A stretch of DNA of 34,407 nt from Basidiobolus meristosporus CBS 931.73 (GCA_002104905.1 MCFE01000802.1:1-34407), one strand, 5' to 3'. Positions 126-34,200 are shown, counted from the first letter of the stretch. The notes: a model not told the origin generated them from the sequence alone. A program made the numbers and translations.

Positions 126-2155
126 ATGACGATACACAACATATCCCCAGTCCGTTTTCATCATAATAAGTCAAAGGTAGTGTATCCAATCCCTATGTCA
201 GACTCGGCCGCGGAAAGGTGGTATTCAACCCTCGTCCTTTTTAGTTGAACGGCCACTTTTCGGAGCTGGTCAGAGAGCTAACTTCTACAGAAGTCACCGT
301 GGTTGGCAACTATGATTTGTTGGAGACGATAGGCAAAGGTACGCCACATATACATTCAATCAACCTTGACCTCCTATTAGTGTCTAAGGACCTAATGCTG
401 AACTGTGTGTAGGTGCCTACGGTAAAGTGAAATTGGGAATGCACAGGCTCACTGGACAGAAGGTACACAGTCTAGTTAGGACCTATCCTGTTTCTTCCTA
501 TGCACTCAACACGCCAACGTTTACCAACCAGGTTGCCATCAAAATCGTGGATAAAACTCACGCGCACACAGTAGCACGAGAAATCGAGATGTGGCGTCAC
601 TTGCACCATCCGAACATCACGCAGCTTTTGGAGATTCTGACTACCGAAACCAAAATCTACATGGTGATGGAACACGTTACTGGAGGGGAGCTTTTTGAGC
701 ACATAACGAACAATGGTGCTTTGAATGAGCCTTGCGGAAGAAGCATCTTCAAAAAGCTCCTCCTAGCTGTAGAATATATTCACAAGAAACGATACGTTCA
801 TCGTGACCTCAAGTTAGAAAACATCTTGCTGGACAAGAATTTGGATCCGAAGATCATTGATTTTGGGTTTACACGCGGTATTCAAAGTCGGAGACTTTTG
901 GATACCTACTGTGGCTCTTTAGCTTACGTAGCACCGGAAGTCATTGCTGGTGGCCAATATTCCGGTCAGGAGTCTGACGTCTGGTCGTTGGGCGTTATCC
1001 TCTACACCATAATGTGCGGATATCTCCCTTTTGACGACGAGGATGAGAGTGTTATGCAACGCTTGATCGTCAACGCCGACGTCTCATTTCCTGAAGGGTT
1101 CCCCAAAGGTATGTGATTGCGATCCTTGACTGAACCTTGCTAGCATCTGCTAAGACAGTGCTTCCACCCCCCCCCCCACAGAATGCCAAGATTTGATATC
1201 CGGCGTCTTAAAAAAGAACCCAATGGATCGACTGACAGTTGAGGAGATACTGAAGCATCCGTGGATGGCCGATCCGGAAACCCCGATGGATTACGAGATG
1301 GGTGCAGCTGCTCCGTCCCACACTGCTTTTGGTGATCAAAGCCAACCTGGCATGGGCATGCGAGCTAGTTTGAAGTCTCCATGCCAGCAAGAGCCTGCTT
1401 CCGCAGCGAGCCAGTCGGTTTCTGAACTTCGATTATTCTCTTTATTGACCTCAGCAGGGATGAGGGTGGAGATGATGAAGAAATCGGTTCAAGAGAATCT
1501 ATGTGATTCTCTTTCTGCCCTGTACTACTTGCTGCTGAAGAAGAACCATGAGGCGCTTGACAATGACAAGCATGACACGGGGGCACAGAAGAGAAGACCA
1601 ACCAACAACGAGATGAACTTCTTTCGCCAACCCCGGAGCCTACCCCGAGCAAGCGAGCTGTTGTTCAATGAATTTAAAGGCAACGACAAGAAAGCCCCCA
1701 GCGGAAAACGCAGCAACATACAGAAGCTTAAAACCCGAGCTGGCATTCATGATTTTAAGCTACCGTCGCCACCGTTTTTCAAAAGATTCGATCTACACTT
1801 CATCCGAAAACACAAGCCGATGTACTCAAGCGATGACATATCTAACAAACTTACCGTGACCATAACTCCACCGACCTCACCCAATCCTTTGGACAAGGCA
1901 AAGGCCCAAGCAACCACCCCGCTCACCCTCCACAAAGCCACCGCACCTCCCCTGCCGGTGGCTGGCGTCGACGACATGCAGAAGCAGCACACGCGGCTCC
2001 GGAATATCCGAGGGCTGACGGTGATATCCAATGAACTGCACGACGAAAGGTCCCAACGCAGCCAAGTGATCACGAACCTTCAGCGGAGCATGGACAAGCC
2101 AAGCTTTCGAGCCATTCAGACGACGATCACTGAGGAAGAGGAAGATGAGATGTGA
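126..2155 (+). CDS. CAMKL/AMPK-related Ser/Thr protein kinase (fungal Ppk16-like), 5 exons, about 581 aa
   Basis: Exons 126-176, 245-338, 413-462, 532-1108, 1182-2155 with GT-AG introns and consistent phases. Spliced start reads MTIHNISPVRFHHNKSK-LNGHFSELVRELTSTEVTVVGNYDLLETIGKGAYGKVKLG. Kinase motifs VAIK, HRDLKLEN, DFG, YCGSLAYVAPE. UBA-like segment (LFSLLTSAGM...CDSLSALYYLLL) and a disordered C-terminal tail. Confidence 0.9.
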
Positions 2156-3530
2156 ATGCGCAGGTCTAACTCGGGTCTTGAGCCTGCAGGGTCTCTGCCT
2201 CGAACCCTAGAATAGGCCATCGGATAACCACAGTGTTGTTGACAATATAACTGAACATTTATATTGATATATCCAATAAAACCTTTGACTCATCCCACTC
2301 GTATGGCAGCAACCATATGCAACCCTGTTGGTTCCAACGTGTTACATTCGCTACTGCCCAATCCTACGAACGGCGCGGCATCACAGCAGAATCTCGGCCC
2401 ATCCCTTCTAGATACAGGCGCTTGCAAGCATTTTGGGCCACACTGGCTTGCTTCTAGGTCCAACATCGATTCATCCGATATGGATCGTTTGGCCCCGATC
2501 CCTGTTGTCCTTGCGGCAGGCCCCTCCCATGCACCAAAGTGGTTGTATCAGGCTACACATGAAGCGTTTCCTTCCCAGCCCAGCAGTCAACTGAGGCCTA
2601 CCGACCCCACTCCCCACAGCAGGGGATCTTCAAGCGTCCTTGGAATGTTTATCAACATCAGCCAATGATCGTGGAGACGTTTCATTATTGCATAGCGTTA
2701 CATCATCCGGTCGGTAATACGATGGATCAATATGCTCATGCATCCATTCATGAGGACACCTGATTTCCTGTGGGTTTACCGGCGATCGTTGGCGATAATT
2801 GGTTCGTGGCAGCAAATTTTACGCTGTTCATTTAAGGTGAGAAAAGCGATGAGGACGTGGATGTGGATGTGACGAGTGAGACCAACCATCCCCATGCCCG
2901 CCTACGCCCGCCATAGGGAAGGGATTGTCATCGATACTCGGATAAGCCTTGTTCAACTCAGCACAGCATTAGGCAATAGGCGTCACTCGCTCGCAGGCTT
3001 TTTTTTAATCTGGAAATACGATTGTGGGGATAGGGAACAGGTTCTCCTGCTGGATTAGGCAAGTGGTCGACAGGCTTCGTTTCACTGGAGCGCTTGCCTA
3101 TTCATTCCTTAATCCCGAGTTCTGGGAAGTCTTCTGGCATGGTGTCTTGGGTTGGAAGACAGAAAGAGCAGTGTGCTGCAGGGTATAGCGTGTCTGCAGA
3201 GCAGCCGAAGCGTGGGCCGTATTGTTCTGCGGTGCTAGCGCACTGCGCGGTACATCGAGAATGAGGAAGGCGGCGGATTCCTAAGGCTACCTTCCACAGA
3301 GTCAAGCAGACACACAGATGCTTGTTTCAAACCGAATATACTGGGATTTCAAGAGGCGCCAAGATCCATACGTGGGAACAACAAACATGCCAATCATTAC
3401 CATTATTCGATGGGCCATCATCAATGAGACACCAGCTGCTCGATCTTCCCCGCAAAGAGATCCCAATAAATACCCATCAGACACCCCATTCGTGAACACT
3501 ATCCCTTCGCACCTCAAAGATTATCAGGCC

Positions 3531-6157
3531 ATGGTAAAGCGCATAAACATTCTGTGTGTTTGCCTTGGGTTCTCCGCACTCGCGAATGCGCAGTACCGAA
3601 ACTCCACCCAGGTAGGCTCCGCCGATTGTCCCGGGTATAGCGTCACCAGCGTTCAGACCCGCGGCAACTCCTTGTTCTCCAGACTCTCACTGCGCGGTCA
3701 GCCTTGCAATCAATACGGGAAAGACGTCAAGGACCTTCTGTTGGAGGTTGATTATGAGAACTCTCGCTTACGGGTAAAGATCTCCGATGCGGACCAGAAG
3801 CACTGGGAGGTCCCTGTATCCATGTGGAGTCCAGACAAAAGCTACCGCCCGAAAACTTCCATGGGACAGTTACTCGAGTTCGCCTATCAGAAGGACCCAT
3901 TTTCGTTCCAGGTGAAACGCAAAGACACGGGCGAAGTGCTCTTTGACACAAGCAAGCATCGGCTAGTTTTCGAGGACACCTATCTGGAGCTGACGTCTAG
4001 CCTTCCGGAGAATGCGAATATCTACGGACTTGGCGAGGTGGTTGACACCTTCCGAAGGGACCCGACAAACACCACCCAAGCCATGTGGGGTAGAGATGTC
4101 GCGGACCCGGTACGAGAAAATCTCTATGGAACCCACCCCTTCTATATCGAACTGAGAAACGGCAAGGCTCACGGTGTCCAGATTCTTAACAGCTACGGAA
4201 TGGACGTGATCTTGGAGAAAAACTCCGTAGCCTACAAGGCTATCGGAGGGGTTCTTGACTTCTCGTTCTATCCTGGCTCAGACGCATACGAGGTCATTAA
4301 CCAGTACACCGCAACGGTCGGCAGGCCTCACCAAATTCCATACTGGTCTCTGGGCTTCCATCAATGTAAGTGGTGAATTCGACTGCCTTGCACATAGAAA
4401 ACCTGATCGCTAACATCTCCGCAGGTCGTTACGGCTACGTTGACATCGATGAAGTGGAAGGGGTGGTGAAGAACTACTCGCTTGCCAAAATCCCCTTGGA
4501 GACGATGTGGACTGATATAGAGTACATGGATATGTTCAAGGACTTCACCCTGGACCCCATTAATTATCCACTCGAGCGCGTCCAGAAGTTCGTTTCCGAG
4601 CTTCACGACAATGGCCAGCAGTATGTGTTGATCATCGACCCTGCCATCCAACGAAACGAGAGCTATGCTACCTGGACAGAAGGGGTGAAACAAGATGTAT
4701 TCATCAAGAACCCCGATGGATCTATATACATTGGCCAGGTTTGGCCGGGGTACACTGCCTTCCCCGATTGGTTCGCGCCAAACACGCAACAATGGTGGAC
4801 GTCCCAAATCAAGAACTTCATGGACGACGTGGCGATCGATGGTCTATGGATAGACATGAATGAACCGGCATCGTTCTGTGTTGGCTCGTGCGGGTCTAAC
4901 CGCACCGGTATTCCACCCTATCCTTGGGAGGATCCCAACTACAAGCCGGACATCCCTCAAACTTTCCCAGAACCTCCCTATGCCATCCACAACGCTTACG
5001 GCAATCTCTCGGTGAAGACCGTTAGTACAGAGGCCGTCCACCATGGCGGGCTTACCGAGTACCAAGTCCACAATCTGTACGGCCATATGGAAGCCATAGC
5101 CACCAGAAAATCTTTGCTCTCCGTCAACCCCAACAAGCGACCATTCCTGCTGGGCCGATCCACATTTGCTGGATCTGGTGCGCACGAAGGCCATTGGACC
5201 GGCGACAACTGGTCCACTTGGGAGCAGCTCCGATACTCCATCTCCGGGGTTCTAAGCTTCCAGATGTTCGGGATTCCGTACGTTGGCGCGGATATCTGCG
5301 GCTTCAATGGCAACACCACAGAGGAACTGTGTCTACGCTGGATGCAGCTGGGCTCGTTGTATCCGTTCTCGCGCAACCACAATGGCAAGGGGAACATCGC
5401 CCAAGAGGCCTATGTTTGGCCCTCCGTGGCCGAAGCCAGTCGCAAGGCGCTTCACACTCGCTACGAAATCCTGCCATACCTGTACACCCAGTTCCAGCAT
5501 GCACACGAGACCGGCCATCCCGTATGGAGACCGTTGGCCTTCGAATTCCCCAACGACCAGGAGATGCTGAACAACGACTTGCAATTCTTGGTGGGTCCAG
5601 GGATTTTGGCATCCCCCGTTCTCGCGGAAGGGGCGACCACTGTGGACGCCAAGTTCCCCGAGGGGATTTGGTATGACTACTACAATTGGAGTCCCATAAA
5701 CGGCACCGCCAAGCGGACCCTCTCCGCACCACTGGATGGAAATCTACCACTCCACATTCGCGGTGGACACATCATTCCGACCCAGGAGCCAGCAATCACC
5801 ATCGCACAATCGAGGGAAAATCCATTCAGCCTGCTAGTGGCCTTGGATGAGCAAGGCAATGCCGAAGGGGGCCTCTATTTAGACGACGGGCAGAGCATTC
5901 ATGTGGGCCAGCAGTTCAGCAAGATCTTCTACCGGGCCACCTCCCGCGGCGTCCAGGCCCGTGGTCACTTTGGATATCGCAGCAAGGCTCTGCTGAAGAA
6001 CATTACCATATTGGGGCTCAAGGCCCAACCCAACGAAGTCCGGGTGGATGGACGTGCCATATCTCCTAATCAGATATTCTACCACGCGGAAAAGAGGACA
6101 TTGATCATCGCTCAGCTGAGCGCCTCCATGAATAGGCCACTCCGAGTGACCTTCTAG
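3531..6157 (+). CDS. Secreted glycoside hydrolase family 31 alpha-glucosidase, 2 exons, about 855 aa
   Basis: Exons 3531-4365 and 4425-6157; the 59-nt intron (GTAAGT...GCTAAC...GCAG) restores WSLGFHQCRYGY. Signal-peptide-like start MVKRINILCVCLGFSALANA, then DCPGY. GH31 nucleophile motif WIDMNEP, acid/base motif HWTGDN, plus GADICGF and YPFSRNHN. Confidence 0.95.
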
Positions 6158-6837
6158 GCGCGGGGGCTGGGGAGAGGCGAGGACGAGGCTGATCATTGAT
6201 GAACGAACCTACTCAGCCTCCAGCGTTCAAGTGATGTTCGCACCAATGTCAATTTTGATTTGCAAACAAATAAAGGCCTATTAGCACTGTACCTGTTGCA
6301 GCAGCATGTAGAACGGCGGTCCCGTCAGAATATTCGCGGTATTCATTTTGTGAACTTACCCCGCGACCATGCCACACGCGGACGTATGGCTTAGATGCCC
6401 ACCTGGTCGAAGCCTGGGAAATTTCGATGGCTTGTTGGCAGCACAGGGTCTTACCAATTACCTCGATCCGCTTGTTTTGTATGTCATGGAAGCCGCTGAC
6501 AAGCATCGTATCTGGATTGGTCCGACTGATGGATAGGGAACTTGGAATCTCGATGGTGTAAATTGAGCGGAATGATTCATATTCTGTGGGTGGCGTGTAG
6601 CAAATTCTGATGTATTTTGCCAGATACAGGTGGTAGGAATTACGTCTGAAGTATGAGATTATCCCCGAAATCATCGACCATTCGTGGGGAGCTGTGGGAT
6701 TCCGAAATCGAGGGATGGTACGTACTCCTTCGTGACGTCAATTCAATTAGGATCTACAATAAATGTCCTTTGGGAACCCACCTCACTCCTCTTAGGTCTA
6801 GTCAACAACCCAGTCCCGCCAACTCGTTTATAAGAAT

Positions 6838-8539
6838 ATGTTTTCTGCCTTGAGAAATGAATCACTATCTCTACCCAAACGCATACTCACCAGTCAGCGC
6901 TATCTAGCCACCATGACACCACAGGTATTTCCATTTGGCTCTTTGCCGTGGCCCAGTAGCTGAGACTCTCCCTTGCTCTAGCTGAAGAAAACCAACTTGC
7001 TGAAGGAAGCGGCCTTTATCAACGGAAAGTTCGTTGGCGCCTCCACCAACCAACGCTTCGCGGTGAAGGGTGAGACTAGTTCTTGGTTTCTCTTGAATAT
7101 GCATACTGATACCGTGGTCACATAGATCCCGCCACTGGAGAGGTCATTGGAGAAGTGCCTGAAATGGATGTGACTGATTGCAAGAAAGCCATCGACGTTG
7201 CCTCAAACACCCTGAAAACCTGGAAGAAGACCACCGCCAAGGTAAAGCGACCGTCGTCTTCCTCGTGTGGCCTGCACCTTGAACTTACTGTACTCTATAG
7301 GCGCGCAGCGACATGCTGGAACGGTGGTATGACCTCATGATTGAGAACAAGGAATCGCTAGCGCAGATCCTGACCGCCGAAAATGGAAAGAACCTGACCG
7401 AATCGCGGGGGGAGATTGAATACGGCGCGTCGTTTATCAAGTGGTTTGCGGAGGAGGCTCGCCGTGCCTACGGCGATGTGATCCCCTCCCCGGTAGCTGA
7501 CAAGCGTCTGATCGTTATCCAGCAGCCGGTCGGTGTGGTTGGAATCGTCACCCCCTGGAACTTCCCCAACGCCATGATCACTCGGAAGCTAGGGGCCGCC
7601 CTCGCGGCAGGATGCACGGCGGTGGTCAAACCAGCCCACGAGACCCCGTTCTCTGCGCTGGCCCTCTGCGAATTGGCCAACCAGGCGGGCATACCCGAGG
7701 GGGTCATCAACATGGTTACCACCCAGAAGCACACCAAGGACATCGGCAAGGAAATGGCAGAGAGCGAGAAGGTGCACAAGCTGTCATTCACCGGCTCCAC
7801 CGGGGTTGGCAAGCTGCTGATGGAGCAGGGCGCCTCCACCATCAAGAAGATCTCCCTGGAGCTGGGTGGCAACGCCCCATTCATCGTATTCAACGATGCC
7901 GACGTGGATGCGGCCGTCGAGGGGGCGATTGGCTCCAAATTCCGTAACACTGGCCAGACCTGCGTCTGCAGCAACCGACTATTGATCCAGTCGGGGATCT
8001 ACGACGAGTTCGCGAAGAAATTGGTCGAGCGAGTCAAGAAGTTCAAGGTTGGGCATGGCTTCGAAGAGGGGGTCACCCACGGGCCACTGATCAGCGAGGC
8101 GGCGGTGGAAAAGGTGAAACGCCATGTGGATGACGCGGTGAGCAAGGGAGCCAGCATCGCCCAAGGTGGCAAGCACATCAAAGGAAACTTCTACGAGCCC
8201 ACCGTATTGCTGGACATGAACACTTCCATGGCGATCACCACCGAAGAGACCTTCGGGCCAGTGGCTGCCTTGTATAAATTCAGCAACGAAGACGAGGCCA
8301 TCGAGTTGGCGAACGACACACCATTCGGATTGGCCGGGTATTTCTACAGCAGAGACGTGGGCCGCATATGGAGAGTTGCTGAAGCGATGGAAGTGGGCAT
8401 GGTCGGGGTCAACTGCGGCTCAGTCAGCTTCGAATCGGCGCCGTTTGGCGGCATCAAGCAGTCCGGTCTGGGCCGCGAAGGGTCGAAGTACGGCCTGGAG
8501 GAGTATCTTGAGAAGAAGTTTATCTGCATGTCTATCTAA
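6838..8539 (+). CDS. UGA2: NAD(P)-dependent succinate-semialdehyde dehydrogenase (ALDH5/GabD family), 4 exons
   Basis: Exons 6838(or 6913)-6924, 6982-7069, 7126-7241, 7301-8539. Spliced N-terminus [19 protein letters not shown]...[12 protein letters not shown]. Motifs [23 protein letters not shown] (catalytic Glu), GQTCVC (catalytic Cys), [22 protein letters not shown]. Confidence 0.92.
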
Positions 8540-13206: not shown

Positions 13207-16200
13207 CTATGCGGCGATCTCGATTTGTGACTGTTGGCCAGTTACCGGGATGCCGGCGCCGGATGGTCTGGTCTTCCCGGGGAGCCTCCTATCCACCGGT
13301 TGGGGATCAGGGTAGATCGCTGGCTTGTTAATGTCCAGGTCTCCCACAAACGTCGTGTTTTTACTGTCGAGCACGGTCAGCATTTTGGATCTTTTGTAGA
13401 TGACCTTACCGTCCAGGACGAACTCTAGGCCATCAAGTACCCAGGAATCCTTGAATATACCGAACTTCTCGAACTTGATGGCGAAGTGGCGTATCTGATT
13501 GGGCCTGAACACCCCGGCGACGTCGATGAAAAATGAGTCGGTGTCCCCACGCCCGAAGGATTGCCGAAGCAGGGATTCCAGGGGATAGACTCGCACGTAG
13601 TACGATTCTGGCCGGATGTCTCCCAGCTGAAGGCTGACCCGACCCCAGGTCCCCGCACCATCGAAGTGGTACCATGGGGCGAGGGAGTTCTTCCCCGTGA
13701 CAAGGGTTATTTGCATTAGTCTTAGATAGTTAGTGTTGGTGCTGGGGGGAAGCAACTCCTGGAGGAGATTGATGTAATTGAGAATGCGATGTCCCTCCCC
13801 CTTCCGGAGCCTGATGGCCGAAGGGACATGGTTGTAGCCAAGGGTGAACAGATTGACCGGAAGGCTATGTATAATACTTGCATCTCCATGGCAAACGTCA
13901 TCGCTCGGGTCTTGGAAATGATAGCCGCGCATGACAGTCTGAAGCGTGATCCAATACTGCCTAAACTCACTGTTCCCAACTGGCGGCGCTCCGTATGTCA
14001 GACACTGTACGAAATTGGGGCATCTGGGGCCGTAATGCTCCACGACGTAGGTGGTAATATCCAGGGAGCAGAGGATGGCCATAGCGCCCCCGAGGGAATG
14101 TCCCGTGACAAAGATATGCTCGATCTTTTCAGACCCGCCGATTTCCGCGATCAACGTGTCCAGGTTTTCGAAGATCTGGGATTTGAGTGCCGTGTAGTAG
14201 CGAAGGAATCCCCGATGCACTCGGATGTTGCTATACGACTTCTCAGCATAGAAGTCGGTCATCACCAGATCGATGTCGGCAAACACATCCTTCCAAGTCT
14301 TTGTGCCGCGGAAGGTTAGCACGATCGAGTTGGTGTTGCTGGCCAAGAACCCGAACGAGTCCTGAACCCTCCTTCCACCCTTCAGAAAGGCCTTGATGGT
14401 CAACCCCATGCTGTCCAGCCGTTCTTTGATCTTGTCTGGCGTATCATACGCGATGGAAGACAGGTTTGCACACAGTAGCGCGTTTTTTGTGAAATCCTTG
14501 TCCTGGCATGTGTCTGGAGTGGTGAGCGACCTTCTCCATACGCTACCGTCGCTCCCCAACCCCCATATGTTGTTGCTGTTACCTGTGTGTACACTTCTTA
14601 GCTTTCCGCTCTCAGTGGTGAACTTCCCGTTGCCGGCGTAGCGATAGACATCCATAAATGAGTCAGTTCCCCAGATAGCTCCATCGTTTCCAACCGTTAT
14701 GCTGTTCAGTCTGACCCTCGGGACGATTTTCCAGCCGTACTGCGAAGTGTACTGATAGACCTGGTTGTAGACAGTGATGGCCCAGATGTTTTCTGCGTTG
14801 CCAACGGCAATACTTTTTAGATTCCCTTGAACGTTCCTCCAGCTCAGTACCTTCTCTTCGTTTTCGCCTGAATCCATGTAGAATTCCTCTGGTACCACCC
14901 GCTTCCACCCATTTTCTGCTCTTTGCCAAAGATAGCCAGAAAGGTCGAGTCCCCAGATGACACCGTCTGAGCCGACGTTTACGCATTTGAATCCGTGAGA
15001 CTTTCCGTCCTTGACCCAAACGTTGTCCTGAAGTTGGTAGTATGCATCGCCCTCAACATCCACCGCCCAGATATTATTTCTCATTCCAACGGAGATGCAG
15101 GTGAACTGTCCACTGACCGGTTTCCACCACCCACTTCCTTCTGCACCCAAGCTCCAGACGGACTTGTCCTTGGCCAAAGCCCATACCGCGCCATCTCCAC
15201 TTACACTAAGGTCGCGAAATCCGCCAGTTTGGGCCAAGTCTCTTTCAGTACCATCCTCACAGACGCGGAGTGAAATTTTCTCCCATCCCACGTTGCCATT
15301 GAGATGAGATGCCTTCTCTGGCATAGGCAGCAGCCAATTTTCCACCCATGGTTCATCTGCAACTGATGCGTCGATGGTTTTGGAATAGAGCGTATTGAAG
15401 GAATCCACGCCAAACAGCCTCCACCCCTTCTCCGTTTGGACAATTGTGGTGTGGGTTAGCAGGTGATCGATGGAAAGATCCACCTTTTTCCAGCGGAACA
15501 TCGATAAATAGTTCAGGTAAATTTGAGTGGTTCCTTTGTCAGACTCCTGAATGTTTACTATCATCGGGTGTCCTGAGAAATGCAGCATGAGCTGCGTGAG
15601 TTGGCCCATGTTAACATCACCCTTCAGGATTCTCCTCGCCTTCCCCGTCTCAAAGTTCAAGGATAAGACATTACTGTTAGCGTCAAACACTAGTAGTCTT
15701 CCCTCCCCGATTTCTATGGGGAAATCAAGATATCTGTTAGTATTAATGGACAGATTATGTAGGACAGTGTATGTCGTGCTACCTGATGGCATGAAATTAT
15801 TCACGATCCCCGAGAATTTCCTATTTGCAAACTGCTGAACAGACATCACTCCAAATGGATTGTCGAGTTTAAGCTTCAATACGCTCCCATCCTCGGTCAT
15901 CCCGAACACTGCATCATCTTGTCCATGCAGCATACGAAGGCGCTTGGGCGGGCTAGGATCCATCGGGACCTCCCGCCATTCAGCGATGTTTTTCTCCTCA
16001 GTGGCCCCCAAAGTAATGATGTATACTTTCTCGTTGGTGCCCAGGGCGTACAGGGTGTTTCTATTGACAGCAATGGAGCATAGCGTAGTTGGGGGAACTC
16101 GTGGCCACGATTTGTTCCATACAGGTTCTGACTCAGAAGTGAAGTCCAAGCACCAGAGATCACTGTTCTCAGTAAGTAGTATTAGATGGCGACTCCAGTG

Positions 16201-16209
16201 CAGCATCAT
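13207..16209 (-). CDS. Intronless 1000-aa multidomain protein: divergent N-terminal propeller-like region + six tectonin-type beta-propeller repeats + class 3 lipase + PLAT/LH2 domain
   Basis: Six repeats of W-x(5-9)-[FL]-x2-[ILV]-x-[VT]-[GS]-x4-W-[GA] at about aa 309-560. Lipase_3 motifs FRGTKTWKD, VHRGF, VTGHSLGGA (Ser about 705), DDVC (Asp about 770), HRILNY (His about 807). PLAT signature ITLVTG...GAGT.G.VSLQL...FGRGDTDSF...WVLDGLEF. No signal peptide evident. Confidence 0.88.
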   Translation of the reverse strand: MMLHWSRHLILLTENSDLWCLDFTSESEPVWNKSWPRVPPTTLCSIAVNRNTLYALGTNEKVYIITLGATEEKNIAEWREVPMDPSPPKRLRMLHGQDDAVFGMTEDGSVLKLKLDNPFGVMSVQQFANRKFSGIVNNFMPSGSTTYTVLHNLSINTNRYLDFPIEIGEGRLLVFDANSNVLSLNFETGKARRILKGDVNMGQLTQLMLHFSGHPMIVNIQESDKGTTQIYLNYLSMFRWKKVDLSIDHLLTHTTIVQTEKGWRLFGVDSFNTLYSKTIDASVADEPWVENWLLPMPEKASHLNGNVGWEKISLRVCEDGTERDLAQTGGFRDLSVSGDGAVWALAKDKSVWSLGAEGSGWWKPVSGQFTCISVGMRNNIWAVDVEGDAYYQLQDNVWVKDGKSHGFKCVNVGSDGVIWGLDLSGYLWQRAENGWKRVVPEEFYMDSGENEEKVLSWRNVQGNLKSIAVGNAENIWAITVYNQVYQYTSQYGWKIVPRVRLNSITVGNDGAIWGTDSFMDVYRYAGNGKFTTESGKLRSVHTGNSNNIWGLGSDGSVWRRSLTTPDTCQDKDFTKNALLCANLSSIAYDTPDKIKERLDSMGLTIKAFLKGGRRVQDSFGFLASNTNSIVLTFRGTKTWKDVFADIDLVMTDFYAEKSYSNIRVHRGFLRYYTALKSQIFENLDTLIAEIGGSEKIEHIFVTGHSLGGAMAILCSLDITTYVVEHYGPRCPNFVQCLTYGAPPVGNSEFRQYWITLQTVMRGYHFQDPSDDVCHGDASIIHSLPVNLFTLGYNHVPSAIRLRKGEGHRILNYINLLQELLPPSTNTNYLRLMQITLVTGKNSLAPWYHFDGAGTWGRVSLQLGDIRPESYYVRVYPLESLLRQSFGRGDTDSFFIDVAGVFRPNQIRHFAIKFEKFGIFKDSWVLDGLEFVLDGKVIYKRSKMLTVLDSKNTTFVGDLDINKPAIYPDPQPVDRRLPGKTRPSGAGIPVTGQQSQIEIAA

Positions 16210-16404
16210 AGGCAGTCGACTGCAACGTGGGTTAGTATTGGCTCCGCTAGAATGCAGTGATTTCTAACTTACGGTGGATAGACGAAGTTGTTTTTAGACT
16301 CCTTTGGGAACGGCAGATCTAAACTGGGAAATAATCAGCATATTGTGGTGACGGTTTACGTTTCACCTATCTCCACTTCGCATGCACAAATAATCAAATG
16401 CCAC

Positions 16405-17052
16405 CTACCGGATTCTGCGTGGCTTATTTTGAACGGATTTCTTCAAACGAGACCACTTTCGAAGAAAGCGACGAATAAGTCTCAGGCACGTACGCTTGAT
16501 CTTCGGCTTGACTTCGACTAGAGAATCCAGAGTAGACTCGGCATTTTTGTCGTCGGAAATGTGCGTGGGCTCCCCCTCCTCTTCTGGTTCGTTTCCTGGC
16601 GATAGCTTCAGATAAGCATCAACCCATAGCCCAGCCGCAAGTGGATCATCAAAATGGAGTTGAAACTGACGTTTCCGGCTCTGAATATGTAGAGTACTCC
16701 CTGGTGTATCCGATGGCTGGATGAGTTCGAATCTTTGCACGTTGTTGCAGCTAATGATTTTTGGGTTCTCCAACTTTTCGGGGCTTTGGCAGATGAACAG
16801 CGTACGCGAGTCCATATTGACAGAGTTGTAGAACTCATAAATATCCTCCAGATCACACTGTGCCGCTCCGATGGCATGCCGTGTGAGCATCACCTGGGTA
16901 TCCTCGATACTAAGCGGGTGCTCATAAAGTATAAGGTAGCAGGGAATCTGGTCTTGAGTAGCATGGCCTTCGTATAAAATCAAGTGACTTGATGGTGTTT
17001 TTTGTGTGGGTGGCGGATTATCAAGCCTGTTGGCTCGCCGTAAAACAACCAT
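16405..17052 (-). CDS. Hypothetical 215-aa protein with a PH-like domain and a basic C-terminal tail
   Basis: ATG at 17052, uninterrupted ORF. The segment TLHIQSRKRQFQLHFDDPLAAGLWVDAYLKL resembles the last strands and Trp-containing helix of PH folds. It is followed by an acidic linker and a K/R-rich amphipathic tail. Confidence 0.6.
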   Translation of the reverse strand: MVVLRRANRLDNPPPTQKTPSSHLILYEGHATQDQIPCYLILYEHPLSIEDTQVMLTRHAIGAAQCDLEDIYEFYNSVNMDSRTLFICQSPEKLENPKIISCNNVQRFELIQPSDTPGSTLHIQSRKRQFQLHFDDPLAAGLWVDAYLKLSPGNEPEEEGEPTHISDDKNAESTLDSLVEVKPKIKRTCLRLIRRFLRKWSRLKKSVQNKPRRIR

Positions 17053-22224: not shown

Positions 22225-23724
<1,500 letters not shown>

Positions 23725-30950: not shown

Positions 30951-31205
30951 TGTTGGGATTTACTTAGAATATTTTCACCAAAATACCAGGTACCCAGAAC
31001 ATGAAAATTTGATAAGTTGTCCAAACAGCCCCAAACTTTGCACACATGTTCTTGGGACCTTCCTTAACCCATTCTATGTGTTTGTAATGCCAAGACCAGG
31101 TAAAAGTATAAATACTACTTTTACATTCAATAAATCATTAAGTGAAAACCACATAATCTACTTGTTCTCCAAATCACTTCCAATATCTCCAAGACTCTCA
31201 CAACA
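30951..31205 (+). repeat. Putative 5' LTR (255 bp) of the Ty1/copia element
   Basis: Starts TGTTG (30951) and ends CAACA (31205), a 5-bp terminal inverted repeat. Contains TATAAATA (31107-31114) and AATAAA (31129-31134) and is directly followed by a PBS. The 3' LTR is outside the window, so the direct repeat cannot be confirmed. Confidence 0.75.
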
Positions 31206-31217
31206 GGTTATGAGCCC
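31206..31217 (+). other. Primer-binding site complementary to the anticodon stem-loop of initiator tRNA-Met
   Basis: GGTTATGAGCCC directly abuts the LTR-terminal CA. It is the reverse complement of GGGCUCAUAACC, the fungal tRNAiMet anticodon arm, which is the priming mode of yeast Ty5 and Drosophila copia. Confidence 0.8.
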
Positions 31218-31236
31218 CAAGCTGTCACTCTCTGCA

Positions 31237-34200
31237 ATGTCTACTACTGCTATTACTGGAATTTTTCCCTCTGCTGAAAAGTTGGATGGATCTAACTACC
31301 AAGTGTGGAAGGTGAAGATGAAGATGCTGCTACAAGAAAGTGGCCTTTGGGATATTGTCATGGGAGAAGAATGCCCTCCTAAAAACGTGGGAGAGGAAGC
31401 CTTAAAGTACCAGAAGAAAGAACAAAGTGCCTTTAACTGCATTTGCCTTAATGTTAAAGACAAATTGCTAATTCAATGCTCAAGAGCAAAAACGGCAAAG
31501 AATGCCTGGAAAGCATTAGAAGACACCTACCAGTCATGTTCAGCTGCCAAGAAAATGTATCTGAGACAAAAATTCTTTACTACAAAGATGCTGCCATGAG
31601 AAGAAATGAAAAATCTAATTAACAGAATTACCCTGCTGGTAGATGAGATGGAATCTGTGGGCATACCAACTACTGATGAGGATGTGATAGTTACCATCCT
31701 GAATAGCCTGACAGACAAGTTTCAGGGCCTTGTATCAGCCCTAGAGTCCAGAACTGAAGATTTGACCTTAAATTATGTATATGGAAGGCTCCTGGATGAA
31801 GAATTAAGAAAATCAAGCGCCAATAAGAAGGAAGAAGAAAAAGCTTTAATAAGCAATGATAACCAACAAAGGAGGTGCCCAAGACCCTACAAAGGCAACA
31901 GCAACCTGTTTTGTAACTACTGGAAAAGGAAAGGACACACATCAGACCGGTGTCTCAAAAAGAAAGATAATCAGCAAAAGAAGCCTGAATATGGAAATGC
32001 TGCAACAACTGAAGATAGACTATTCATATCTGCACTAAATATGACCACAAACAAGGATTCTCAGATGTGGTATATTGACTCTGGAGCATCTCAACACTTT
32101 ACACACCAAAAAGAACTTTTTACCCAATATCAAGAAATCCCAATTAAGAAGGTTTTCATGGGTGATGGTAGAACACTTGATGCAGTGGGAGAAGGAACTA
32201 TCCAAGTAAACCTTAGAAGCAGTGAAGGAAGCCATACACTGACCTTTAAAGAAGTACTCTATGTACCAGAAATAGCCAAGAACCTACTCTCTGTAAGCAA
32301 GGCCACAGCAGAAGGACTCAGTTTCAGTTTTGACAATTCTGGATGCAGGATCACTGATCAAAATGGTGCCCATATTGCTTTGGGCAGCAGAGATCAAAAT
32401 CTATACAAGTTGACTTATATTCCATCATATCTGGAAGCCAATATAAGTAACTTAAATGAAGAAACACCAATGCTTTGGCACAGGAGATTTGGGCACATCA
32501 ATTTTGATTATTTGTGTAAAATGATCAAAGATCAGCTAATTTCTGGAGTGAAAATTGATCCCCCAGCTAATTTGGAGCACTGTGAAGCCTGCATATATGG
32601 GAAACAAGCCAGACAACCGTTCAAGAGCTCTGGGTTAATCAAAACTAAGAAAAAATTAGATCTAATTCACTCAGATCTGTGTGGACCTATGCAAAATTTA
32701 TCCTTAGGCGGGATGAAGTATTTAATCACTTTTATTGATGATTATACAAGATACACATGGGTCTACTTCATGGAGAGAAAGGAAGAAGCTCTGTCTAAGT
32801 TCAGGGAGTTTAAAGCCATAATGGAGAGAGAAACTGGTGAAAAAATCAAGAAAATACGCTCTGACAATGGTGGAGAATATACCTCAAAACTCTTCATCCA
32901 CTTCTGCAAAATTCATGGGATAAAGCAAGAGACTACTGTACCATACTCCCCACAGCATAATGGAGTAGCAGAACAAGCTAACAGATCAATAATTGATATG
33001 GCAAGATCTATGATCCATGATCAAAAATTATCCTATGATTTTTGGGCAGAATCAGTTGCCACTGCTGTATACCTTAAAAATAGGAGTTATAACAGAATAC
33101 TTCGTGATTCTACTCCATTTGAAGCATGGTATGGATACAGACCAAGTGCAGAACATCTAAGAATATTTGGGTGTACAGCATATGCCAAAAAACTGGCCAG
33201 AAATCAGTCAAAATTTGAGCCAAAAAGTGTAAAATGCATATTTTTGGGCTACTGCAATGAGAGTAAGGCATACAGACTCTACAATACCAAAGCAAAGAAG
33301 CTGATCAAGTCCAGGGATGTGTTGTTTGATGAAAATTCAAAATTTTCACAAAAAATGACATCAGATGATGACAAAAATTTGATCTCAAGTCCACCAATTG
33401 TCAGGATTGAATCAGAGCAAAACAATGAAAATTTTTTCACTCCAGAGGACTCTACAACTGTGGTTCAGCCAGAATCAGTGCCCAGGAATATCCCAGAAGT
33501 GATCATTCCAGTATCAAATGCCCGGAGATCAAATCGGACAAGAAATAGCCCAAATCACTATATTAATGAGGGTACAAACTTAGCCTATGCCTATTCAGTC
33601 CATATTGATGAACCCCAGACTGTAAAAGAGGCCCTAAATAGCCCTCAGACAACGTTTTGGAGATCTGCAATGACTGAGGAATATCAGGCACTGATGGAAA
33701 ATCAAACTTGGGACTTAGTCAAATTACCAATCAACCAAAAATCAATTGGATGCAGATGGGTCTTCAAGACAAAATACAAGGCTGATGGTACAATTGAAAG
33801 ATACAAAGCAAGACTTGTAGCCAAAGGATACTCTCAAACAAAAGGACTTGACTATACTGAGACCTTTGCACTGTTAGCCAAGTTTAATTCCATCAGACTA
33901 ATATTGGCTAATGCAGCCAAATATAAGTTTTTATTCATCAAATGGATGTAAAAACTGCATTTTTGAATGAAGAACTTGATGAGGACGTGTATATGGACCA
34001 GCCTGATGGGTTTGCTGACCAAGATAACCCCCATTTGGTCTGCAAGCTTAAAAAGTCACTATATGGTCTCAAACAATCACCAAGAGCCTGGAATTGCAAG
34101 ATAGATTCTTATTTGGAATCTTTGAGTTTCAAAAGGAGTAATGCTGACTATAGTATATACTATAAGCCAGATAGAGCAAATCCAGTTCTATTAGCTCTAT

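Follow-up and report, generated by a model that had tools for sequence, protein, structure and literature searches.

What is a class-3 lipase doing in one fungal polypeptide with lectin-type propellers and a PLAT domain, and where did this combination come from? The question is raised by a locus on the minus strand of the Basidiobolus contig MCFE01000802.1, of which we analysed the whole stretch of 34,407 nucleotides (the window). An open reading frame (ORF) survey of the window returned an open frame of 1000 codons at 13207-16209 (-), which an earlier note had described as one uninterrupted ORF fusing six tectonin-like repeats, a Lipase_3 domain and a C-terminal PLAT/LH2 domain. Our results indicate that the coding sequence is not this frame: as predicted from the sequence, the gene has four exons (17052-13207, minus strand) and encodes 1212 amino acids. 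The account that we favour, and hold at a little short of an even chance, is that of a propeller-guided, PLAT-anchored lipase acting on membrane glycerolipids, with a core of bacterial origin. All four recognised domains belong to known fold families; the combination of tectonin, class-3 lipase and PLAT is unstudied. Residue numbers refer to the 1000-codon frame unless another protein or model is named.

Domains of the predicted protein and structure of its gene

The working end of the protein is a predicted interfacial serine lipase with an intact triad. The class-3 lipase alpha/beta-hydrolase domain (13732-14499, minus strand; residues 571-826) matched Pfam PF01764 (Lipase_3) at E 5e-23, with 82 bits against a cutoff of 22, and the Rhizopus and Rhizomucor lipases at E 5e-12 to 1e-10. 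The motifs GHSLGG, DDVC and HRILNY start at residues 703, 770 and 807, and provide Ser705 (Ser917 of the spliced protein; codon 14095-14097), Asp770 (13900-13902) and His807 (13789-13791). When the domain was aligned with fungal and bacterial relatives, G-H-S-L-G (Gly133 to Gly137, Ser135 being Ser705 of the ORF) and Asp200 (Asp770 of the ORF) were at least 90% conserved in one alignment (A2), and the GHSLGG residues, the Asp and the His were invariant in another (A5). We then modelled residues 571-965 with AlphaFold2 from a 21-sequence alignment, with a mean predicted local distance difference test (pLDDT) score of 83.8. Residues 1-258 of this model superposed on feruloyl esterase A (FaeA) and class-3 lipases with Z 21-25 (VIA); the class-3 lipases gave Z 23-25 and a root-mean-square deviation (rmsd) of 2.5-2.8 Å over 211-218 residues, and the top structural neighbour was FaeA (1uwc_A; Z 25.2, Foldseek E 6e-14). 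The Lipase_3 domain and the complete Ser-Asp-His triad proposed in the earlier note are therefore upheld by profile, by motif and, at Z 25, by fold, and the AlphaFold and Foldseek check on this region agrees with them. The Rhizomucor and Rhizopus lipases (1TGL, 6A0W, 1LGY) and Aspergillus FaeA (1UWC) share the alpha/beta-hydrolase fold and the triad, but each of them is a small enzyme of one domain, secreted and made with a propeptide and a signal peptide, whereas the window lipase is only 20-24% identical to them, has no signal peptide, is flanked by propellers and PLAT, and is nearest in sequence to bacterial lipase-PLAT proteins and not to fungal lipases.

The C-terminal PLAT/LH2 beta-sandwich (13339-13725, minus strand; residues 829-957) is identified through homologues, a family profile and a predicted fold, and not through the Pfam model. 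The latter (PF01477) gave no match in the window protein even at E<=10, with the whole ORF or its C-terminal 197 amino acids as the query; NCBIfam scans were likewise without a PLAT match, and a phmmer search of the PDB with the C-terminus alone returned noise only. P0006, a metagenomic homologue of 557 amino acids, is colinear with the window protein over 389 columns (31% identity, E 5e-46), and its matching segment passes the Pfam PLAT cutoff with 28.4 against 23 bits, as does that of P0038 with 24.8 bits. A family profile built from ten C-terminal domains (A4) found residues 270-355 of the Clostridium perfringens alpha-toxin at E 1.1e-4 and residues 31-113 of 11R-lipoxygenase at E 3.3e-4. 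Congruently, residues 259-387 of the AlphaFold2 model superposed on the alpha-toxin C-domain (1olp_A 255-370) with Z 13.7 and an rmsd of 2.4 Å over 115 amino acids (VIA); the same region gave Z 12.1 with 5-lipoxygenase, 11.1 with 15-lipoxygenase and 9.3 with the Rab6IP1 PLAT domain, and coral 8R-lipoxygenase also superposes. The PLAT domain claimed in the earlier note thus stands, although the Pfam model is silent.

PLAT domains dock enzymes at lipid surfaces in clostridial alpha-toxin, the lipoxygenases and pancreatic lipase. The alpha-toxin of C. perfringens and C. absonum (a zinc phospholipase C with PLAT) and the pancreatic and lipoprotein lipases share with the window protein the order of a lipid-cleaving domain followed by a C-terminal PLAT, and pancreatic lipase-related protein 2 and lipoprotein lipase align loosely across both domains (Z 8.0). 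The catalytic domain of alpha-toxin is, however, unrelated, pancreatic lipase belongs to another alpha/beta-hydrolase family, and both are secreted. The window PLAT also carries an extra aromatic loop compared with those of alpha-toxin and pancreatic lipase: APWY lies between the first strand and a conserved GT motif, is family-specific and conserved in the A4 profile, and in the form APW[WY] is common to the fungal and bacterial lipase-PLAT members. In the ESM Atlas, plants have sizeable Lipase_3 + C2 families, in which a class-3 lipase is analogously coupled to a beta-sandwich that binds membranes. The chain ends in a Pro/Gly-rich tail of 35 amino acids (13210-13314, minus strand) that is missing from the orthologues P0001 and P0002; it recurs in the B. 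ranarum fragment P0032, whose end, GQSQVKVA, resembles the end GQQSQIEIAA in the window, and the tail is for this reason taken as real.

N-terminal to the lipase lies a six-bladed tectonin propeller (14524-15225, minus strand; residues 329-562). It matched Pfam PF19193 at E 1.2e-28, with 100.5 bits against a cutoff of 30, and Tectonin 2 (Tec2) of Laccaria bicolor (PDB 5FSB) at E 9.4e-22. Six tandem repeats could be laid out over about residues 328-562, with ~37-57 amino acids per blade and a [VI]W[AG] core in each, in agreement with the six tectonin-like repeats that had been proposed. Tec2 (5FSB/5FSC) is a homologous six-repeat propeller, fungal, cytoplasmic and without a signal peptide; it differs in being a stand-alone lectin of 227 amino acids for O-methylated glycans, while the propeller here is one of five modules.

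Next, we defined the gene model by aligning the orthologues and combining the alignment with GT-AG sites and conserved intron positions, so that splicing is inferred; P0001 served as the full-length proxy for the spliced window protein. Exon 1 (16409-17052, minus strand; 644 nt) starts with the ATG at 17052, matches the first ~215 amino acids of the orthologues P0001-P0003 and ends at a GTAGGT donor at 16408. Its product begins with the actual N-terminus of the protein and comprises a putative PH-like domain, an acidic linker and a predicted helix rich in basic residues; the upstream ORF in which exon 1 lies (16405-17052) matches ~240 extra N-terminal residues of the orthologues. Intron 1 (16324-16408, minus strand; 85 nt, GT..AG) is at a position that also bears an intron in the B. 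meristosporus locus L088, and is followed by exon 2 (16273-16323, minus strand), whose 51 nt, or 17 codons, code for the stretch LDLPFPKESKNNFVYPP, common to P0003. Intron 2 (16220-16272, minus strand; 53 nt, GTAAGT..CAG) leads to exon 3 (15783-16219, minus strand; 437 nt) with the first part of the N-terminal propeller 1. The ATG at 16209, taken as the start in the earlier note, would be the internal Met236 of the spliced protein. Intron 3 (15714-15782, minus strand; 69 nt, GT..AG) contains TACTAAC, which resembles a branch site. Because the intron keeps the reading frame and includes no stop codon, the ORF appears uninterrupted and reads it as 23 residues (143-165), a stretch missing from all three orthologue models in the alignment. 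Exon 4 (13207-15713, minus strand; 2507 nt including the stop) is intron-free and contains the remainder of propeller 1, the tectonin propeller, the lipase, the PLAT and the tail. The exon lengths total 3639 nt, that is, 1212 codons and a stop, and in the annotated orthologue L088 three introns of 63, 54 and 63 nt occupy the matching positions, with an exon 2 that likewise measures 51 nt. Consequently, the 1000-codon frame claimed in the earlier note exists, while the claim of an uninterrupted coding sequence gives way to three introns, a start at 17052 and an intronic origin of residues 143-165. The B. meristosporus counterpart of intron 3 has 63 nt, likewise a multiple of three, and a putative intron-3-retention isoform adding 23 residues to propeller 1 is possible. 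At the junction of the two propellers, the segment 15229-15270 (about residues 314-327) holds an 11-residue insertion relative to the three orthologue models, placed at residues 315-327, a stretch that begins RVCEDG; an intron would have to be longer, and splice-like ends are missing.

The corrected model places ~560 residues, which include a further propeller as well as the PH-like domain and the basic helix, ahead of the part that had been described as a three-part architecture, and that description has to be given up. The putative PH-like domain (16603-16989, minus strand; residues 22-150 of exon 1) had no Pfam match; its ESM-feature neighbours were all PH families (score 0.88, a lead only), and its predicted C-terminal helix holds a Trp that is invariant in five aligned Basidiobolus sequences. 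After an acidic linker comes a polybasic predicted helix (16411-16527, minus strand) with 15 K/R and two D/E in 39 amino acids, conserved in the orthologues and present as a low-confidence helix at residues 185-208 of the orthologue model. Propeller 1 (15235-16209, minus strand; residues 1-325, split by intron 3) appears to be a degenerate tectonin/Hyd_WA-like beta-propeller. It had no match in Pfam, and its ESM-feature neighbours were Hyd_WA/Tectonin (0.90-0.92). We modelled the N-terminal fold with residues 1-540 of P0001 and five sequences; the overall pLDDT was 50 and the model is usable in the propeller part alone, where pLDDT was 60-87 across residues 240-410. Residues 233-538 of this model matched many propellers with Z 13-15, and a likeness to so many families supports the fold class of propeller 1 and nothing narrower. 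By hydropathy, no signal peptide or transmembrane segment was seen in the true N-terminal exon or in the ORF, where the highest 19-residue values were 0.55 and 1.48, respectively; the absence of a signal peptide noted earlier therefore extends to the corrected N-terminus.

Relatives and ancestry of the lipase-PLAT core

The closest proteins are both annotated as hypothetical: P0001 of B. ranarum (1170 amino acids, 65% identity) and P0002 of B. meristosporus (1091 amino acids, 59%). A phmmer search with P0001 against 1.84 billion representatives gave 4233 matches, and among the best 150 of them only Basidiobolus proteins covered the full length and no match from outside Basidiobolus reached residues 1-510 of P0001. 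A second B. meristosporus locus (L087 3240-7029, MCFE01000110.1) has the same order of PH-like domain, propeller, tectonin, lipase and PLAT at ~39% identity to P0001, and B. ranarum contains the second-copy fragments P0003, P0005 and P0032. Two paralogues of full architecture with ~39% identity, together with these fragments, indicate that the family is old and was duplicated in the genus, with at least two paralogues. Besides correcting the gene model of the window locus, the comparison revealed that the public models of its orthologues and paralogues are fragmented or bridged across frame breaks. The L087 paralogue is annotated as five short gene models (ORX98624-ORX98626 and two more) and has one in-frame stop between the ORFs 4120-4596 and 4609-7029. 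The P0002 model contains two extra short 'introns' of 41 and 68 nt (L088:10047-10087 and L088:11051-11118) that bridge frame changes, the second of which takes the catalytic His segment out of the predicted protein. The L088 frame breaks are either an assembly error or the mark of a decaying copy; the window copy is open throughout.

Outside the genus, parts of the architecture recur on bacterial and bacteria-like contigs. P0040 (961 amino acids) combines tectonin, Lipase_3 and a PLAT-like C-terminus, with a weak Ricin_B match in front, and its contig looks bacterial on account of its 67-70% GC and the intronless gene. P0108, P0110 and P0159 (517-538 amino acids) carry tectonin and Lipase_3, the first of them on a 108-kb bacterial contig. 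Lipase_3 with PLAT was found in P0006, which also carries DUF5648, and in P0038 and P0104, while P0134 (Cohnella faecalis WP_119152682) has Lipase_3 with a PLAT-like C-terminus; the genes that surround P0038 and P0134 are clearly bacterial. On the P0104 contig (JGI 3300050821), a gene for a Laminin_G_3 + tectonin protein of 928 amino acids (350-3136) ends 58 bp upstream of the lipase-PLAT gene (3194-4441) on the same strand, and this gene pair is the unfused counterpart of the fusion proteins. None of the bacterial relatives showed an obvious signal-peptide-like start within its first 60 residues. As a group, the bacterial and metagenomic relatives share with the window protein a colinear lipase-PLAT at 26-32% identity, the APW loop and the position of tectonin N-terminal to the lipase; they differ in lacking the PH-like domain, the basic helix, the second propeller and the introns. 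The earlier note had not recognised the architecture from any characterised protein. No characterised family member was indeed found, the GenBank orthologues being hypothetical proteins, and in the literature searched no paper pairing tectonin with Lipase_3 turned up, the listed co-mentions of tectonin, lipase and PLAT appearing unrelated. The arrangement is nevertheless not confined to this locus, since B. ranarum and B. meristosporus have orthologues and paralogues and P0040 has the tectonin-Lipase_3-PLAT core, and an architecture search found no characterised family but did find tectonin + Lipase_3 and Lipase_3 + PLAT proteins on bacterial contigs.

Some of these relatives have conspicuous neighbours. 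P0108 adjoins a divergently oriented NB-ARC/nSTAND gene in two contigs, and directly after P0108 and P0110 comes, in each case, a gene of ~190 amino acids with the phage-tail Collar domain PF07484 (L005:9691-10254, L006:3757-4320, L090:5152-5739). At L004:8139-11090, the surroundings of the P0038 gene resemble a defence island, with SIR2_2 and nSTAND1 + CHASE2 genes less than 6 kb away.

To place the core, we built an unrooted tree of the lipase(-PLAT) region, in which Basidiobolus is the one source labelled eukaryotic. The Basidiobolus sequences formed one clade (support 93/99), which stands beside a tectonin-lipase group with Cohnella (99/97) and a lipase-PLAT group with Microbulbifer (81/86); the tectonin-lipase fusions fell in three different subclades of the lipase tree. 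All the relatives from outside Basidiobolus that align over lipase and PLAT together, and whose source can be judged, are bacterial or lie on bacteria-like contigs. For horizontal gene transfer we used the criteria of Tabima et al. 2020, that is, bacterial nearest relatives, fungal flanks and nesting in a bacterial clade; the genes flanking the window locus are fungal. A lipase-PLAT core within an otherwise bacterial clade makes horizontal transfer probable, if unproven, and the sequences suggest as the most likely course that an ancestor of Basidiobolus acquired this core, which was then extended N-terminally, given introns and duplicated. Between 2 and 5% of Basidiobolus genes are horizontal-transfer candidates (PMC7466969), and the Basidiobolus transfer studies that we examined mention neither lipase nor tectonin. 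When GTDB species genomes were scanned with the GHSLGG pattern from A5, tectonin or PLAT (local hidden Markov models) occurred in the same ORF in none of the 80 loci listed, and no named donor lineage emerged among them. En-bloc transfer of tectonin, lipase and PLAT was also considered and is unsupported, as the window tectonin is not especially close to those of P0040, P0108 and P0110. If the proposed course is right, a bacterial lipase core became an intron-bearing fungal gene of five domains kept as two old paralogues, a clear case of domain accretion after transfer.

Proposed action and competing explanations

By analogy with known PLAT enzymes, the conserved aromatic APWY loop would let the domain fasten the enzyme to a lipid bilayer or another lipid surface, and the polybasic helix and the PH-like domain may assist in this docking. 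The tectonin propeller and the degenerate propeller would pick the target by binding a ligand, either a glycan, as in Tec2, or a protein, and at the place so chosen the lipase would hydrolyse membrane glycerolipids at their acyl esters. That the propeller supplies target recognition is what we infer from tectonin being repeatedly fused to, or encoded next to, lipases of this clade. Three lipase subclades contain such fusions and one bacterial contig has the two as adjacent genes, a Rosetta-stone-type argument that propeller and lipase work together, and the pairing gives a testable model of a lectin-type propeller aiming a membrane-degrading enzyme. Long-term retention, seen in two full-architecture paralogues and in neighbour genes common with B. 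meristosporus, was counted in favour of the same account. As to purpose, an antagonistic or defence role, meaning an attack on foreign or marked membranes, is somewhat more likely than a housekeeping role. Taken in total, with a stored toxin included, such a role has about an even chance, give or take a little. This estimate draws on the ancestry among bacteria, where the pairing also recurs, on the STAND/SIR2 neighbours of two bacterial relatives and on the restriction to one gut-dwelling genus. Basidiobolus lives as a symbiont in the guts of amphibians and reptiles, is occasionally pathogenic, and is known for the acquisition of bacterial genes.

Several results weigh against this account. 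In Tec2, the sugar is contacted at each blade interface by Ser, the Asn of WGVN, Tyr and Trp, the Asn being hydrogen-bonded to the sugar (PMC6359319). In the window propeller no blade retains this Asn, the six residues being A, D, D, T, D and G, while the stacking Tyr is kept in half of the blades and gives way to Trp in the others (W, Y, W, Y, Y, W). The propeller is thus a member of the tectonin fold whose predicted binding site departs from that of Tec2-type lectins; with the Asn replaced throughout, glycan binding is not assured and lectin activity is putative, so that a glycan is a possible, not a supported, propeller ligand. The lipase fold leaves the substrate class open, as its nearest structures span a feruloyl esterase and triacylglycerol, diacylglycerol (DAG) and phospholipase A1 (PLA1) lipases. 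The PH-like assignment is weak: a five-sequence profile found the PH region of intersectin-2 at E 0.22 and that of TAPP1 at E 0.51 in the PDB, neither of them significant, and this part of the P0001 model (pLDDT <56) is too poor to decide the fold. PADLOC assigned no defence family to the window protein or to three bacterial relatives. Concerning ancestry, an unrooted tree with Basidiobolus as its one labelled eukaryote and a deep node supported at 47/30 does not prove the direction of transfer. Moreover, the window tectonin scored 35, 29 and 13 bits against P0040, P0108 and P0110, compared with 60-72 bits for many other tectonins, and at such low similarity the fusions may have arisen independently.

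In a somewhat unlikely alternative, the protein is an endogenous, regulated membrane lipase of the PLA1 or DAG type, which PLAT, the polybasic helix and the PH-like domain together would bring to the fungus's own endomembranes or plasma membrane; it would serve lipid signalling, membrane repair or turnover, and the propellers would be scaffolds that bind proteins or sense damage. The lack of a signal peptide fits such an enzyme, as do PH-like and polybasic additions that, among the best 150 matches, are specific to the fungal proteins, the unconserved sugar-contact Asn of Tec2, ordinary fungal neighbours in conserved synteny, structural neighbours that include a plant PLA1 (7x0d, Z 22.7) and DAG lipases, and the analogous pairing in plant Lipase_3 + C2 proteins. 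Metazoan TECPR1, a large cytosolic protein with a PH domain and tectonin propellers that acts at membranes, is a loose parallel; it has DysF domains and no hydrolase, and its likeness to the window protein is that of a shared repeat family. For a core membrane function, however, it would be odd that among the matches listed our searches placed the family in no eukaryote besides Basidiobolus, and the lipase-PLAT core groups with bacterial or bacteria-like sequences. The pairing with tectonin also recurs in bacteria, which have no endomembranes, and this argues for an external or foreign ligand; the PH call, for its part, is not significant. A narrower form of the favoured account, unlikely as it stands, is a stored cytoplasmic chimerolectin toxin that is freed on hyphal damage by a fungivore or gut animal, uses its tectonin propeller to bind foreign (e.g., O-methylated) glycans, and kills through its lipase. 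The chain does unite lectin-type and enzymatic domains without a signal peptide, as expected of chimerolectins, and its tectonin is homologous to the nematotoxic lectin Tec2. The Marasmius oreades agglutinin resembles it in the fusion of a lectin-type domain to a hydrolase, again without a signal peptide; that protein, a lectin plus protease of about 290 amino acids with proven glycan-dependent toxicity, has another lectin fold and another enzyme, while toxicity of the window protein is a hypothesis. Two papers place the organism in animal guts among bacteria (PMC7466969, PMC10964425), and this was counted in favour of such a toxin. Against this, the binding-site Asn of Tec2 is missing in all blades, stored lectin toxins do not usually carry a PH-like domain or a polybasic helix, and 1212 amino acids in five domains contrast with the compact fungal lectin toxins generally known.

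The identity of the top structural neighbour raises the further idea, very improbable in our estimate, of an ester hydrolase that does not act on membranes and deacylates a glycoconjugate (a lipoglycan, glycolipid, acylated polysaccharide or cutin/feruloyl-type ester), the propellers holding the glycan part and PLAT the acyl-rich surface. FaeA heads the list (Z 25.2, Foldseek E 6e-14), and relatives have carbohydrate-type modules (the weak Ricin_B of P0040, DUF5648 in P0006 and Laminin_G_3 upstream of P0104). FaeA and the lipases are, however, at most ~2 Z units apart, and the fold does not discriminate between them; PLAT is generally known from lipid-interface enzymes, and a protein without a signal peptide has no evident access to wall polymers. 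A pseudoenzyme scaffold or decaying relic gene is hardly credible. Plant EDS1 and PAD4 have lipase-like domains that lost catalysis, EDS1 is among the structural neighbours, and the B. meristosporus orthologue model has two pseudo-introns, one removing the catalytic His. The window frame is nonetheless open over 1000 codons with its triad intact, the triad and GHSLGG are kept in B. ranarum, the paralogues and the bacterial relatives, and errors of assembly may explain the frame breaks of that orthologue.

The membrane-lipase account that we favour can be extended to a bolder version, which we regard as decidedly unlikely: a one-chain sensor and executioner of fungal cell-autonomous immunity, descended from a bacterial conflict-system lipase. 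The propellers would respond to a ligand that betrays non-self or damage, in the cytoplasm or at it, by releasing the PLAT-anchored lipase, which would destroy the marked membrane, whether the invader's or, suicidally, the cell's own. The bacterial tectonin-lipase genes beside STAND NTPase genes would be the prokaryotic counterpart.

Surrounding genes

The window gene lies among ordinary fungal neighbours, namely a Ser/Thr protein kinase (427-2155), a GH31 alpha-glucosidase (3318-6157), an aldehyde dehydrogenase (7313-8539) and a queuine tRNA-ribosyltransferase (22225-22908). TGT on one side and Aldedh on the other flank the gene in both the window and L088. Further along, a Ty1/copia-type long terminal repeat retrotransposon (31009-33951, plus strand), with gag, integrase and the start of RVT_2, sits in a low-GC (37-39%), A-rich stretch that extends to the end of the window.

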